From the NCBI RefSeq assembly GCF_000143415.4, contig NW_003314336.1, positions 361,296 to 425,295 of the forward strand: a stretch of 64,000 bases of DNA, written 5' to 3'. This DNA comes from Selaginella moellendorffii. Taxonomy: Eukaryota; Plantae; Lycopodiophyta. This document shows positions 56,811-61,554 of this stretch, one piece after another (positions within the stretch are counted from its first letter, which is position 1; each line of letters starts with the position of its first letter). A model generated the notes under the pieces. The model saw only the letters and a list, made by a program, of their open reading frames with translations, had not been told where the DNA came from and did not search any database. The position numbers and the translations under genes were made by a program.

Positions 56811-58528
56811 ATGAACGATCTTCTCGGGGTGAGTGGTGGCCTGCATTCTCTAAGCTTAGGCTGAATGGAGTGAAAAACAATTATTTCTTTGTTTACAGGA
56901 TATTCAGATCGTCGAGGATGAAGAACCAGAGAAAGAGAAGAAATCCAAGAAGAAAGTCAAGAAAGCGGAGAAGAAAAATGCGGAAGAGGCAGCTCCAGCG
57001 GATGATATGGGAATGACCGAATTCTTTCAGCAGGTTTTTCTTCTACTTCACTCCATAGAGCTTCTCTTTTGCATTTGCTTTAGGTGAATGCGCAAATTGT
57101 TTTCTGCGCATTAGCTTATCTCTTCTCTCGTGCAGGTTGCGGACATTAAAACTGAGATGGCAAACATTCGGAAAGCTCTCAAGAAACTCCAGGTTCTCTC
57201 TCTTTCTTTCTTTTTTTGTTTTTCGGTAACTCAAGTAAGAGCGTTACGTTTAGGACGCCCATGAGGATACCAAGACTGTCACAAAATCCGATGTCATGAA
57301 AGGTATGCTGTTGTCTCAATCGCTTTCTCTTTTTCGGATTGAAATCACACAATGCAATGTCTCTTAGCCAAGAAGAATGAGATGGAAGCACAGGTCGATG
57401 TAGTCACTAAAATAACGCAGGACATTAAACATAAAATAGAGTCACTAGACAAAGCGGTAAGCTATTATATATTCTCTTTTGTATGCTCTAACCATTACTG
57501 CAGAACATTCTGAATAGGAAAAAACCAAACTGTGGGGAAGGATCTAGCACTGACCGCACAAGAATGTCAATGACAGTGTAAGCTCGTTTTCTACTTTCCG
57601 CTAGCAAAGCCTTTGACTGACCTTAAGAATGATACGACAGAACGCTGAAGAAGAAACTCAAAGACGTGATGCAAGAATTCCAGGTACCAAAAGTGCACAA
57701 ACTTTCTCCCGTTTTTCTTGACCACGGAACCGCAGAATCTAAGACAAAAACTACAAGATGAGTATCGCGAAGTCGTAGAAAGAAGGATATTTACAGGTTT
57801 CCGACCATCCTAATCCACAAAGAAACTGGTATATTTCAAGCACTTTGATTTTTTCTTTCTTTCTTTTCTTACACCTTTTGTGTCCTGCTGGTAGTGACTG
57901 GTCAGAAGCCTGACGAAGAGGTGAGTTGGTTCGGGGACTCCGATTCCGAAGCTAACCTCACGTTTGCTTACGTCTTTTGGGTACAGACTGTTGACAAGTT
58001 GATCGAAACTGGAGACAGTGAGACAATTTTTCAAAAGGCTGTTCAGGAACAAGGCCGAGGCCAAGTAAGCACTCTTTGATCCTGCGTTTTCTTTTCTGTT
58101 AGCATCACTATCCTCGCTCTAGATACTCGATACAATTGCTGAGATACAAGAACGGCACGACGCAGTGAGGGACATTGAGAAGAAGCTGCTGGATTTGCAT
58201 CAGGTAGCTCGATAAATTTATCAATCCTTTCACGAGTGTTTGCTCTCAGATCTTCATGGATATGGCCGTGTTGGTAGAAGCTCAAGGAGAGATGCTGGAC
58301 GACATTGAGAACCAAGTAAGAGAAGAACTAGAAAGAGGAGGAAGTTTCTGACGATTAAAACTACTTCAGGTGTCAAAAGCAGTGGATCACGTCCAGACGG
58401 GAACCGCAGCGTTGGAGAAAGTGAAGAAATTGCAACGAGGGACGAGGAAGTGCATGTGTGTTGGCATCATCCTCTTGCTTGTGATTGTCATTATAATCGT
58501 TGTTGCGGTCATACAGCCGTGGAAATAA
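56811..58528 (+). CDS. Plasma-membrane Qa-SNARE syntaxin, SYP13 clade
   Basis: [61 protein letters not shown]-terminal TM, QPWK*. Confidence 0.95.
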
Positions 58529-58652
58529 GTTAGCAAAGATTGTGGTATCAAAGTTTGAATGGGAATCCTTCTATGATATCGTGAAAATCTGATACTTGGA
58601 GGAGAAGTTCAAGGAATTTATTGCAAATGTAAATTTTGATTTTAAAATTGCC

Positions 58653-59477
58653 TTAAACAAATAAGATGTTTTTAAAGAAGTTCATGATGCCTCTTGATTT
58701 TTTGCTCATTTTCTCGTTATTTTGCTCTTGTGAGACTACACAAGTTCCAATTGGAAGCAGGCACTCTGGCATGGAGACTGGTAATGTACGAACTGATTCT
58801 CCATTATCACTGGCAACTTTGGGAATCTGCAAGAGTAATATCATGGTGACTGATCCCATCCCAGGCTTGACGCGGCAATATGGAACAGACACGGATGGAT
58901 CCGTCGCAAAGTACAACACCTGGTACCTGGTCTTTGACGGATCCAGACCAAACTGTAAAATGGACGAAAGGTTCTCTGCGGGGCTCCCATGGAAGCAAAC
59001 ATCAAGCTTACGAAGCCCGCCACCTTGATCTCTGAGAGCCTTGCAGAACTGGAAGTAGCGTTCATGGGTGCTCCTGACGCCACCCTGCAGAAACGGGTTT
59101 GGAGTAACACTCTGTATCCTTGGAAACTGTCTCTGCAACTCTGGCACGATGATCTCCATGAGCTCCGTATCCAAAAGATTGTCCAGAAGCAAAACAGCAT
59201 CATCTCGGCTGACCATCTTGGCTGTGATTCTGGAATTTGATGCCTCTCCTCGCCACGAGTAGACAATCTTGACAGACCGCTTGCAACCAGTTCTTGTGTT
59301 GATCTGTTTCATAGTGCCAAAGTCAATGCGGTATGAATCTCCTGTAGGGTGGGATCTGGAAACAATGACACCGAGATCAAAGGTCGTGGCCCCGGAGTTC
59401 TTCGCAGCCATGATCTTTGAAGACAAGTCGGGACTATATTTCTGCCATCTTAAATTGTCATGCCACAAAACCCCCAT
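58653..59477 (-). CDS. Intronless WWE-domain + PARP-like ADP-ribosyltransferase-fold protein (~274 aa)
   Basis: WWE: LWHDNLRWQKYS...YRIDFGTMKQINTRTGCKRSV. ART: CFHGSPAENLSSILQFGLDP, LYFATDPSVSVPY, CLLPIG. Confidence 0.8.
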   Translation of the reverse strand: MGVLWHDNLRWQKYSPDLSSKIMAAKNSGATTFDLGVIVSRSHPTGDSYRIDFGTMKQINTRTGCKRSVKIVYSWRGEASNSRITAKMVSRDDAVLLLDNLLDTELMEIIVPELQRQFPRIQSVTPNPFLQGGVRSTHERYFQFCKALRDQGGGLRKLDVCFHGSPAENLSSILQFGLDPSKTRYQVLYFATDPSVSVPYCRVKPGMGSVTMILLLQIPKVASDNGESVRTLPVSMPECLLPIGTCVVSQEQNNEKMSKKSRGIMNFFKNILFV

Positions 59478-60280
59478 TCTGTTACCTTGAAAACCTTGCA
59501 CGATCAATATCAATCCAGAGATAAATAGCTTTGATGCCTCCGCAAGATCAGTGAGACAGATCTATCCCGAGATCTTCGAACAAGCAGCTTTGTTTACAAT
59601 TAGCATATTCTATCATTTAGGGTTAGTCTATGGCGAATTCAAAACGCGAAAATTGGAAGAACATACCCGCATAGTTCGGGACGGGCTTGAACCAGCTGGG
59701 AGGAAATCCTTGGAGCAGCCATTTGATCCGATCACCCCAGCTCCCACCACTCGCCATTGAGCGCTCCAGTAGACCACCCACGTCTCTCCCAAAGGAGTTC
59801 AATGATCCAATCCATGTTTTGGATCGATCACTCTGTTGTTACGCCCGATCGATCGCCGAGCTGGAGCCCGCCACCTGAGGCATGTAGCTGACAATGATCC
59901 TCACAGACTCCCTACAGATCTTGTCCGCTCAAAATTCCACCACCACCACCCCGACCACCGGCCCCCACGAGAAATTGTGGAAGCTTGTGGTCACTCCGCA
60001 GGAATCGCTGTAGCGCTCTCCTGGATCGCATAGGTTCGTTCGAAGCTTTGACCGGTCAAGGATTACATTGGAAGATCACCATTGCTTGATCAAGATTGGG
60101 CGGACATAGGCCAAGTTTAGGGTTCTTGGCAACGAATCTTGATGATAAGATGATAGTTGGTGAGGTGAGCATTGTAATTTGAAATAAGCCCAAGATCTGG
60201 TTGGATTAGCCCACAGATAAACGGTACGGTACTGCGCGTTTATGAGTACGGAAAATGCTTGTACAAACTCTTTCTATCTT

Positions 60281-61554
60281 CTAGAGCATTTGGGCGATTT
60301 GATCTCTCTTGTTGAAAGAGCGAGACGAAAAGGAGCGCGAGGAGGACAAATTCTTGTCAACAGTTCTGATGAGATTGTAAGACCACGCCCCACCCAAGGT
60401 GCCGAGCACAGGTCCAACAATGTAAATCCACACGTCGGAATAGTTGTTCCTCGCCACCGCCGGGCCGATGCTCCTGGCCGGATTCATCGACGCTCCGGAA
60501 AGAGGCCTAGACGAACACAAGAGCCAACAAGCCAAAGCTTTAGCACCAAGGAAAACGCAAATCACTATGCCCCGGGGAATGGTTTTCTCCTGCAAAAACG
60601 AAGGTCAATCGCAAGAGAATGATCCAAAGCTTACCTCTCCATGGAGCTCTACAAAAATGCAAAATCGAGAGAGAAAGTATATGAATAGAGAAGGAAGAGT
60701 ACCCTGCAATGAGATTGTTGAGCGCGACTGTAGCTCCAACAGCGAGTCCGGCCAGCTCTCCAACCTGGACCACGCTTAGAGAGCTGAGAGAGGGGGAAGA
60801 GTTTAGCATCTTACGGCTCGAGTGTCAGTGGAAACCGCTGCCACTACAAACATGAGTATGTAACTGACGATGATTTCCAAAACCAAGGCTTGGACCACGT
60901 TGCCAGCGGCAGGAACTGTCGCTCCAATCTTGTTTACTTCTGTGAGAAGCTGCCGGAGCACGAAGCAAGCGCTGACTGACGCGGCGATCTGGGAGCCAAT
61001 GTACAGCGGCACCTGGAACGAGTCACAGACAAAAACAAAAGGGTTAAACAATGAATAGATAAAAGGACTTGGAGAAGCGAAGCTCGAAAAGCACGCAGAT
61101 GCTTTACCTGAGCCCAAGGAAAGTGTCGGACAGTTGCAAAAGCCACGGTAACTGCAGGATTCATGTGAGCCCCGGAGATATGACCAGTAGCATGAATCAT
61201 CATCATAACGACGAGCCCGTTTGCTGCGGCCACTCCAAAGAAAGTCAGCGAGCCGTTTGTAAGTTCGTTCACCATTCCTGCGCCAGCACCGGCGAATACC
61301 AAGATGAACGTGGCAATGACTTCTGCACCGAGCTGATACAACCAAAAGGGAAGCGCGTCAGCAGAGAAAGAACAGCAGGAAGATAGAGTGACCTTCTGGC
61401 ACAATGTAGCCCTCTTCCGGAATCTTGTCCTGGGAATGCAGAGGCTTTTCAGTGTGGGAGGAGAGCAAGGTGAATCCACTTCCATAGCATGATTCTGCTT
61501 CTGCAGATCCAAGTCATGCTTGAAGTTGGGATCCTTCACACTCTCGGAAGCCAT
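60281..61554 (-). CDS. NOD26-like intrinsic protein (NIP aquaporin)
   Basis: [50 protein letters not shown]. Confidence 0.96.

Follow-up and report, generated by a model that had tools for sequence, protein, structure and literature searches.

The question raised by this locus is whether a lycophyte carries a small protein that both recognizes and attaches ADP-ribose. It concerns a minus-strand open reading frame (ORF) in a stretch of 64,000 nucleotides (nt) of Selaginella moellendorffii (contig NW_003314336.1, positions 361,296 to 425,295), hereafter the window, whose own numbering is used throughout. An initial annotation, made from the letters alone, had described the product as one WWE domain followed by a compact PARP-like ADP-ribosyltransferase (ART) domain that keeps the residues binding nicotinamide adenine dinucleotide (NAD), unlike the plant RCD1/SRO proteins. 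The features described there proved correct, and the interpretation drawn from them found support in part. Based on sequence comparisons, a structure model and RNA data, we assign a probability of roughly 0.5 to the reading that the gene product is a mono-ADP-ribosyltransferase coupled to an ADP-ribose reader and encoded by a functional, low-expressed single-exon gene.

Both domains were recovered by profile searches in the intact ORF. Pfam WWE (PF02825) matched residues 5-70 (E 7.9e-10; 39.4 bits against a cut-off of 21.1), and Pfam PARP (PF00644) matched residues 149-214 (E 8.7e-7; 29.1 bits against a cut-off of 26.7), the latter over profile positions 45-113 of 199 only. Both scores lie above the curated thresholds, in agreement with the domain order given in the initial annotation. 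No family besides WWE and PARP was found in the Pfam scan at E values up to 10. The RST domain, which had been reported as lacking, was also without a match at this threshold, and only 23 residues follow the ART fold.

The structure was predicted with AlphaFold2 (AF2) from a 67-row alignment of relatives. The model had a mean predicted local distance difference test (pLDDT) score of 81.5 and consisted of two confident domains with a disordered stretch (residues 75-89) between them. When it was compared with solved structures, 402 of 999 chains reached Z ≥ 8, and among the matches listed nearly all were PARP catalytic domains. ART residues 103-251 superimposed on PARP12 with Z 14.0 and a root mean square deviation (rmsd) of 3.1 Å over 141 residues, on PARP14, PARP15 and PARP10 with Z 12.5-13.4, and on the PARP domain of Arabidopsis RCD1 with Z 12.7. 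Identity was 10% to RCD1, compared with 17-19% to PARP10 and PARP12. Residues 1-78 matched the WWE domain of TRIP12 (Z 12.3, rmsd 2.0 Å, 31% identity). Foldseek, applied to both domains, returned the catalytic domains of PARP12 (E 2.3e-5), PARP10, PARP15, PARP14 and PARP16, and the WWE domains of HUWE1 and TRIP12 for residues 1-78. Thus the predicted model shows both domain folds. The ART domain is short, with about 149 residues compared with 175-198 in the aligned PARP12 and PARP15 chains. It lacks part of the donor loop and the bulk of the acceptor-loop region, which runs from the third core strand to the strand bearing the third triad residue.

The NAD-site motifs FHGS (His), YFA (Tyr) and SxxY, named in the initial annotation, were located at residues 162-165 (FHGS), 188-191 (LYFA) and 195-201 (SVSVPYC). 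The Tyr-to-Ser spacing of eight residues equals that of Tyr919-Ser927 in PARP10 (numbering from PMC9189837). A profile of the family ART domain, compared with solved structures, aligned the Tyr/Ser block to PARP16 (E 1.8e-7), PARP15, the tankyrases, PARP12 and PARP1. The donor loop had been called very short. His and Tyr are indeed only 26 residues apart, compared with 31 for Gly888-Tyr919 in PARP10 (PMC9189837). In total, the PARP NAD-site residues H163, G164, Y189, S197 and Y200 are kept. The claim that the protein differs from RCD1 in retaining these residues was borne out for H163, Y189, S197 and Y200.

The third position of the catalytic triad is Glu in poly-ADP-ribosyltransferases and Ile, Leu or Tyr in mono-ADP-ribosyltransferases. 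In the gene product, this position is most likely T231. The structural alignments end at model residue 251 against residue 1007 of PARP10 and at model residue 250 against residue 1801 of PARP14. Back-counting from these ends to Ile987 of PARP10 and Leu1782 of PARP14 (PMC9189837) led to T231 both times, and with this register the invariant Pro242 coincides with the Pro conserved in the C-terminal hairpin of PARPs. Among the relatives, the corresponding column holds mostly Val, Ile or Met. Therefore, the earlier proposal that Thr replaces the catalytic Glu is probably right, and the family is probably of the H-Y-hydrophobic, mono-ART type. The route to this assignment is indirect. E227 and R230 are kept as less likely alternatives, because the strand in the AF2 model starts two residues before the register of the family alignment. 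A profile of the C-terminal strands alone gave no match among solved structures in the Protein Data Bank (PDB). E227, which precedes the modelled strand, was considered as a catalytic Glu and not preferred, as the offsets from two PARP chains point to T231 and column 227 of the family alignment is gapped or variable.

The ligand pocket of the WWE domain is largely kept. In a profile alignment W5, Y49, Q58, N60, T63 and R67 correspond to HUWE1 Trp1619, Tyr1658, Gln1667, Asn1669, Thr1672 and Arg1676, so that six of the seven ADP-ribose contact residues of HUWE1 are kept. The contacts were read from the HUWE1-ADP-ribose and TRIP12-ADP structures (PMC11269756). The sole difference is C65 at the position of HUWE1 Asn1674, which is Thr825 in TRIP12 and whose mutation in HUWE1 had no effect on binding (PMC11269756). 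Positions G2, W5, W11, Y14, G46, Y49, Q58 and R67 do not vary across 24 WWE domains of the subfamily. Trp occupies the first position of the pocket, as in HUWE1 and TRIP12, compared with Tyr in RNF146, which binds iso-ADP-ribose, and the acidic Asp7 follows two positions on. Thus, the WWE domain more likely reads terminal or single ADP-ribose.

The ORF runs from an ATG at 59475-59477 to a TAA at 58653-58655 on the minus strand and encodes 274 amino acids. The frame is closed by a stop about 30 codons upstream, and as no further ATG in this frame intervenes, the ATG at 59477 is the first usable start. The nearest database protein, SELMODRAFT_429141 of S. moellendorffii (96% identity), represents the copy carried by the assembly's second haplotype, and both haplotypes carry the gene at the same position. 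Alignment of the two loci over the ORF revealed 8 synonymous and 7 non-synonymous changes, with a ratio of non-synonymous to synonymous rates (dN/dS) of 0.25. Non-synonymous changes are depleted between the haplotype copies (Fisher p 0.008), and the ORF is under purifying selection between them. The stretch about 25-70 nt 5' of the ATG differs markedly between the haplotypes and includes indels of 6 bp and 2 bp.

Reads and contigs from RNA runs were placed on window positions 57500-61500. In run X1, one contig covered 58652-59851 with no differences, no gaps and a depth of 14. The neighbouring genes were represented in the same run by spliced contigs with depths of 51 and 300-800 (syntaxin and aquaporin), and the intergenic stretch 59912-60179 was uncovered. 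Thus, the run represents RNA and the contig a discrete transcript. Run X2, from a separate study, yielded fragments of the ORF, one of them with two single-nucleotide polymorphisms of the other haplotype. No splice joints were found inside the ORF in runs X1 and X2. The gene had been described as intronless between intron-rich neighbours, and this holds in the RNA data: the contigs are colinear through the ORF, and the flanking syntaxin and aquaporin genes have seven and four spliced introns, respectively. The gene is therefore real, weakly transcribed and unspliced, with RNA contigs covering the ORF at low depth.

These data also bear on the public gene model of the other haplotype. The 213-residue model SELMODRAFT_429141 (GL377676.1, L001:6001-6742) takes out an intron that drops Y189, S197 and Y200 and shifts the frame. 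Both runs read through the corresponding positions 58827-58926 without interruption. Thus the 213-residue model is unsupported and wrong, with a spurious intron that removes the Tyr/Ser motif. Among the proteins returned by the searches, none corresponded to the 274-residue ORF of the window haplotype. All feature coordinates are collected in the following table.

Features of the WWE-ART gene and its product in the window (residue numbers refer to the 274-residue product)
Feature	Position	Strand	Basis or remark
Complete single-exon coding sequence, 274 codons + TAA	58653..59477	-	intact in both haplotypes: 15 substitutions, 0 indels
WWE domain, residues 1-78	59244..59477	-	Pfam; TRIP12 WWE Z 12.3; profile alignment to HUWE1/TRIP12/DTX1
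Linker, residues 79-102	59172..59243	-	75-89 with pLDDT < 50, then helix 91-101
Shortened PARP-type ART domain, residues 103-251	58725..59171	-	Pfam PARP; Foldseek; VIA Z 14.0 PARP12, 12.7 RCD1
H163-G164-S165, NAD-binding His-Gly-Ser/Thr motif	58983..58991	-	H and G invariant in family alignment A4
Y189-F-A-x3-S195-x-S197-x2-Y200-C201, nicotinamide-site Tyr/Ser/Tyr block	58878..58913	-	profile alignment to PARP16/PARP15
T231, most likely third triad position	58785..58787	-	offset from PARP10 and PARP14 aligned chain ends
C-terminal tail, residues 252-274	58656..58724	-	basic patch, then predicted amphipathic helix; in no relative
GT..AG stretch, 100 nt, taken out as intron in the public 213-residue model of the other haplotype	58827..58926	-	unspliced in RNA contigs
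RNA-run contig, 1200 nt, colinear	58652..59851	not determinable	run X1 record 2; includes 374 nt 5' of the ATG

The tail that follows the ART domain had been described as basic and amphipathic. It contains a KKSR patch and then a strongly amphipathic stretch with a hydrophobic moment of up to 0.8 over 11 residues, and it was modelled by AF2 as a low-confidence helix. The former description was thus confirmed for residues 252-274, as far as the helix prediction goes. In contrast, the membrane tethering proposed with it was not supported. No membrane span was found in the whole protein, as the best 19-residue Kyte-Doolittle mean is 1.27 and lies outside the tail. A transmembrane tail anchor was accordingly ruled out by this maximum and by the basic, amphipathic character of the tail. 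Binding of the tail to a membrane periphery or to a partner is possible and purely inferred.

The family was delimited by a HMMER search that was exhaustive over 1.84 billion representatives and gave 83 matches. The best full-length matches have one or two WWE domains and then a short ART, and were found in Mesotaenium (E 1.4e-21), Chara, Netrium, Closterium, Klebsormidium and Diphasiastrum. Selaginella itself has a paralogue with the same layout (SELMODRAFT_426614/428872), which spans 916 nt for 289 residues. A word-indexed search with the single protein returned the allelic 213-residue model alone, and with family profiles it returned only the relatives of Closterium, Mesotaenium, Ginkgo, Cryptomeria and Diphasiastrum. 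All 30 matches that could be named or traced fall outside SRO, and none of ten relatives examined carries an RST or a WWE_5 domain. No members were found in angiosperms, ferns or bryophytes; these searches were non-exhaustive, and absence is therefore unproven. No description of a plant family with WWE and a short ART was found in the literature searched, and public records name the members hypothetical or "WWE domain-containing" proteins. By sequence, we place the gene in an apparently undescribed streptophyte family that is separate from RCD1/SRO.

Members of this family vary at the catalytic His. Proteins of Ginkgo, Welwitschia and Cryptomeria have a WWE domain of the same subfamily and a C-terminal region that is weakly ART-like and lacks the His. 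In a profile-profile comparison with the ART profile, these regions were colinear and weak (probability 8%, E 0.004), which suggests that they are degenerate ART domains. The His is also lost in Diphasiastrum and in the Logan protein P0022.

Further variation was observed around the two domains. Nearly all relatives (P0002-P0006, P0036 and others; alignments A2 and A5) begin with Met-Cys-(Ile/Val/Leu), followed at a distance of a few residues by Cys-Ala-Asp-Pro-x-x-Pro-Gly before the first WWE strand; the gene product and its Selaginella ART paralogue both lack this N-terminal Cys motif. Two Logan contigs, P0008 and P0014, probably from algal transcriptomes, combine two WWE domains of the same subfamily with a RING-like Cys/His cluster, an arrangement resembling that of Deltex or RNF146. 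In Selaginella, a 343-residue protein, P0005/P0085 (LOC112349277/LOC112346420), repeats the subfamily WWE domain (two clear copies, possibly a third) without an ART. The closest ART-only relative, with 33% identity, lies at L004:4501-4806 on a 9-kb contig of the eukaryote-like ENA assembly ERZ26165376. It has the same Ile-Pro-Tyr-Cys-Arg-Val stretch, and no WWE-coding sequence was detectable within 4.5 kb upstream of its ART.

From these findings the following mechanism can be proposed. The ART domain would bind NAD+ and transfer single ADP-ribose units. Mono-transfer is favoured because the H-Y-Thr site occurs in a family with mostly Val or Ile at the third position, as in PARP7, PARP10, PARP11, PARP12 and PARP14. 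The WWE domain would dock on an existing terminal or mono-ADP-ribose mark. In this way, as proposed for animal PARP11, the protein would recognize one mark and add a second in its vicinity. The basic, amphipathic tail may provide a further, peripheral signal for localisation.

Several observations weigh against this mechanism and the gene being functional. Relative to a normal PARP catalytic domain, the ART domain is about 35-45 residues short. Its third triad residue is assigned by offset alone, with E227 or R230 as less likely choices. The gene product has Thr where the relatives have a conserved Arg, 20 residues past the His, and the N-terminal Cys-containing motif of the relatives is absent. 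The loss of the His in Diphasiastrum, P0022 and the gymnosperms indicates, by sequence, that parts of the family can do without catalysis. On the gene itself, two raw RNA-seq runs, each read to about 12%, had no reads, with both neighbours covered, and therefore expression is low or condition-specific. The immune role suggested initially is neither supported nor contradicted by this low expression. The contig depth in run X1 is also low relative to both neighbours. The 374-nt leader (59478-59851, minus strand) has several upstream ATGs, including a 44-codon upstream ORF, and the strand of the RNA contig is not determinable from the contigs.

Part of these points would fit the main rival reading, a non-catalytic reader or scaffold, in which the WWE domain and the ART fold may bind NAD+ or ADP-ribose, nothing is transferred and the protein acts as an adaptor. 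RCD1, PARP13 and TASOR are adaptors of this non-catalytic kind. We regard this explanation as possible but doubtful. The shortened ART (149 residues in the aligned range against 175-198), the non-conserved Thr at the third triad position and the several relatives that lack the His and are still kept as genes are in its favour, as is the RCD1 PARP domain, which lies structurally near the active PARPs (Z 12.7 against 14.0). However, this protein and the algal members, which are separated by a very deep split, all retain the NAD-site His, Gly, Tyr, Ser and Tyr. Moreover, inactive PARPs typically lack the His, and the human H-Y-hydrophobic PARPs of Table 1 in the same review are active mono-ARTs (PMC9189837). 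It is unlikely that the gene is a decaying, lineage-specific duplicate with no remaining function and only background transcription. The ORF is intact without indels in both haplotypes and constrained (dN/dS 0.25, p 0.008), all ligand-site residues are kept and the AF2 model is confident. Decay would agree with the low RNA depth and the two raw runs without reads, with the long leader and its upstream ATGs, with the loss of the N-terminal motif and the conserved Arg, with a long branch in the ART tree and with a novel tail found in no relative.

Two further explanations concern the origin of the gene. Derivation from the RCD1/SRO clade, as a truncated pseudogene or other derivative, is extremely improbable. 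It would account for a plant WWE domain followed by a PARP-like domain, for the Z score of 12.7 to RCD1 and for an SRO cluster in the ESM Atlas at a feature similarity of 0.89 and a shape similarity (template modelling score, TM) of 0.49. However, the gene product and the ten relatives lack RST and WWE_5, the latter of which marks the streptophyte SRO clusters in the ESM Atlas, the structure-based identity is lower to RCD1 than to PARP10 and PARP12, and of the 116 chains to which the family ART profile matched, the best 60 do not include RCD1. All 30 traced matches lie outside SRO, and the NAD-site residues that RCD1 lacks are present. In its small WWE mono-ART layout the gene product resembles PARP11, in line with the initial separation from RCD1/SRO. 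In addition, algal members exist, and SRO proteins have been treated as restricted to land plants in surveys without streptophyte-alga genomes (PMC2848248, PMC2964712). A foreign origin from a virus, protist or bacterium, or a newly inserted retrocopy, is quite improbable. In its favour, the gene is intronless among intron-rich neighbours. ART-only matches are metagenomic, eukaryote-like proteins with a donor loop four residues longer, and the ART domain is slightly nearer to these metagenomic proteins (25-29% identity) than to the algal ones (19-26%). In the free maximum likelihood (ML) tree of ART domains the Selaginella pair stands on the metagenomic side of a weak split (78/98), and giant viruses do carry WWE and PARP proteins. 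Resolution in this tree is low: 12 of its 21 inner branches are open, and the long branches of the two Selaginella sequences are joined. In contrast, the best full-length matches and the WWE subfamily are streptophyte, and the His-Tyr spacing of 26 is also found in algal members, compared with 30 in the one metagenomic match counted (P0048). An approximately unbiased (AU) test of the ART domain, the only informative result of the tree analysis, did not reject a clade of Selaginella and the algae (p 0.56). The giant-virus WWE/PARP proteins of a viral structure library showed 10-16% identity over the ART or the whole protein and up to 30% over the WWE domain, and a viral origin was rejected as human proteins match just as weakly. 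Taken together, the streptophyte relatives, the AU test and the viral matches favour, on sequence grounds, vertical descent from a streptophyte ancestor over the horizontal transfer proposed initially, the closest relatives of the same layout being streptophyte algae, a lycophyte and gymnosperms.

The intronless state is derived. In Klebsormidium nitens, KFL_000060300 and KFL_000060290 form a same-strand tandem pair (DF236955.1, L003:1-7050), and the second of them spans 3050 nt for 417 residues and hence has several introns. As the Klebsormidium homologue has introns, those of the Selaginella gene would have been removed by intron loss or in an old retrocopy. Retroposition within the lineage is possible by this comparison. 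Downstream of the ORF no poly(A) remnant or other hallmark of retroposition was visible, and the shared position in both haplotypes argues against a new insertion.

At the 3' side, the contig of run X1 ends one base beyond the stop codon (58652), and the 3' untranslated region was not recovered. An AATAAA lies about 35 nt further downstream, and the convergent syntaxin gene ends about 125 nt away, with its stop at 58526-58528. In the minus-strand aquaporin (MIP) gene, at 60505-60702 and 60562-60667, RNA reads carry a 1-nt insertion and deletions of 1 and 2 nt relative to the window, and the interior of a 196-nt intron is also covered by contigs. These observations point to differences between haplotypes or to alternative splicing in the aquaporin gene.

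A mono-ADP-ribosyltransferase with a built-in reader would be of interest for early plant signalling. For land plants, surveys of the PARP superfamily listed PARP1-type enzymes, clade 6 PARPs from a moss, and RCD1/SRO proteins, most of them inactive; the WWE mono-ART clade was reported without plant members (PMC2964712). In contrast to this reported lack, a small family with WWE, ART and an intact NAD site is present in streptophyte algae and a lycophyte. It would add a candidate mono-ADP-ribosylating writer that carries its own ADP-ribose reader. The active-looking and the His-less members would form a natural series for studying the change from ART enzyme to pseudo-enzyme. The ART core of 149 residues is among the shortest PARP-type domains and could serve as a minimal model.

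Compared with known systems, the gene product shares with RCD1/SRO a plant WWE domain followed by a PARP fold. It differs in lacking RST and a WWE_5-type WWE domain, in its low identity of 10%, in its much smaller size and in the presence of its family in streptophyte algae. RCD1 lacks the triad and is inactive, whereas the gene keeps the His and Tyr of the NAD site (PMC2848248, PMC2964712). For residues 1-78, the WWE domains of HUWE1, TRIP12 and Deltex were the best matches (DTX1 E 1.6e-10; TRIP12 E 1.7e-8, Z 12.3). In contrast to these ligases, the WWE domain of the gene is not joined to a ubiquitin-ligase domain.

The compact donor site resembles that of the RNA 2'-phosphotransferase Tpt1/KptA; the two can be aligned over the region of the His-Gly-Thr helix and the compact loop that follows (E 8e-7 for the family profile, E 0.04 for the gene product). 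The relatives have a conserved Arg exactly 20 residues past the His, which is the offset from His101 to Arg121 in Clostridium thermocellum Tpt1, where Arg121 contacts RNA phosphates (PMC6333775). This Arg is carried by a conserved Asp-Pro-x-x-Arg after the His-Gly-Thr helix (alignment A4). In the gene product it is shifted by one (T183, R184; 58926-58931). Of Tpt1's Arg-His-Arg-Arg tetrad, only the fourth Arg has a positional counterpart, in the relatives; the gene product lacks both the tetrad and the winged-helix RNA lobe, and its Tyr-Phe-Ala/Ser-x-Ser/Tyr block is PARP-like. The best 50 structural matches listed were PARP catalytic or WWE domains, with no Tpt1 among them. By analogy, the relatives' Arg at the Tpt1 offset could, speculatively, point to phosphate-directed ADP-ribosylation of nucleic acids. 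A wider scenario is unlikely: the family would be the plant counterpart of the animal WWE mono-ARTs. It would have been active in the ancestor of streptophytes and have persisted in algae and Selaginella, while some lycophytes and gymnosperms made a pseudo-enzyme of it and flowering plants lost it. In this scenario, a Tpt1-like donor site with its conserved Arg would direct ADP-ribose onto phosphates, such as phosphorylated RNA or DNA ends, and not onto proteins.

Among the PARPs, PARP16 was the best solved-structure match of the family ART profile and is likewise a small mono-ART with a C-terminal extension. It differs by a helical N-terminal regulatory domain, Tyr at the third triad position and a true transmembrane tail anchor, where the gene product has WWE, Thr and no hydrophobic span. 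PARP12, a WWE mono-ART, was the best structural match of the ART domain. The closest layout is that of animal PARP11, which also has a single WWE domain directly before the ART in a protein of about 300 residues and an H-Y-non-Glu site (PMC10450202). PARP11-like clusters were also nearest in the ESM Atlas (features 0.93-0.94), with an overall shape similarity of TM 0.51. Identity to PARP11 and the clade 3 proteins PARP7, PARP12 and PARP14 is only 15-19%. Compared with these four, the ART domain of the gene is reduced by about 35-45 residues, its donor loop being shorter and its acceptor loop nearly absent, and Thr stands at the third triad position in place of Ile or Leu. The WWE domain of the gene is closer in sequence to those of the E3 ligases DTX1, TRIP12 and HUWE1 than to that of PARP11. 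Clade 3, the WWE mono-ARTs, has been described without plant members (Citarelli et al., PMC2964712), and the combination of WWE and ART in the Selaginella protein and its algal relatives could be convergent with this animal clade.

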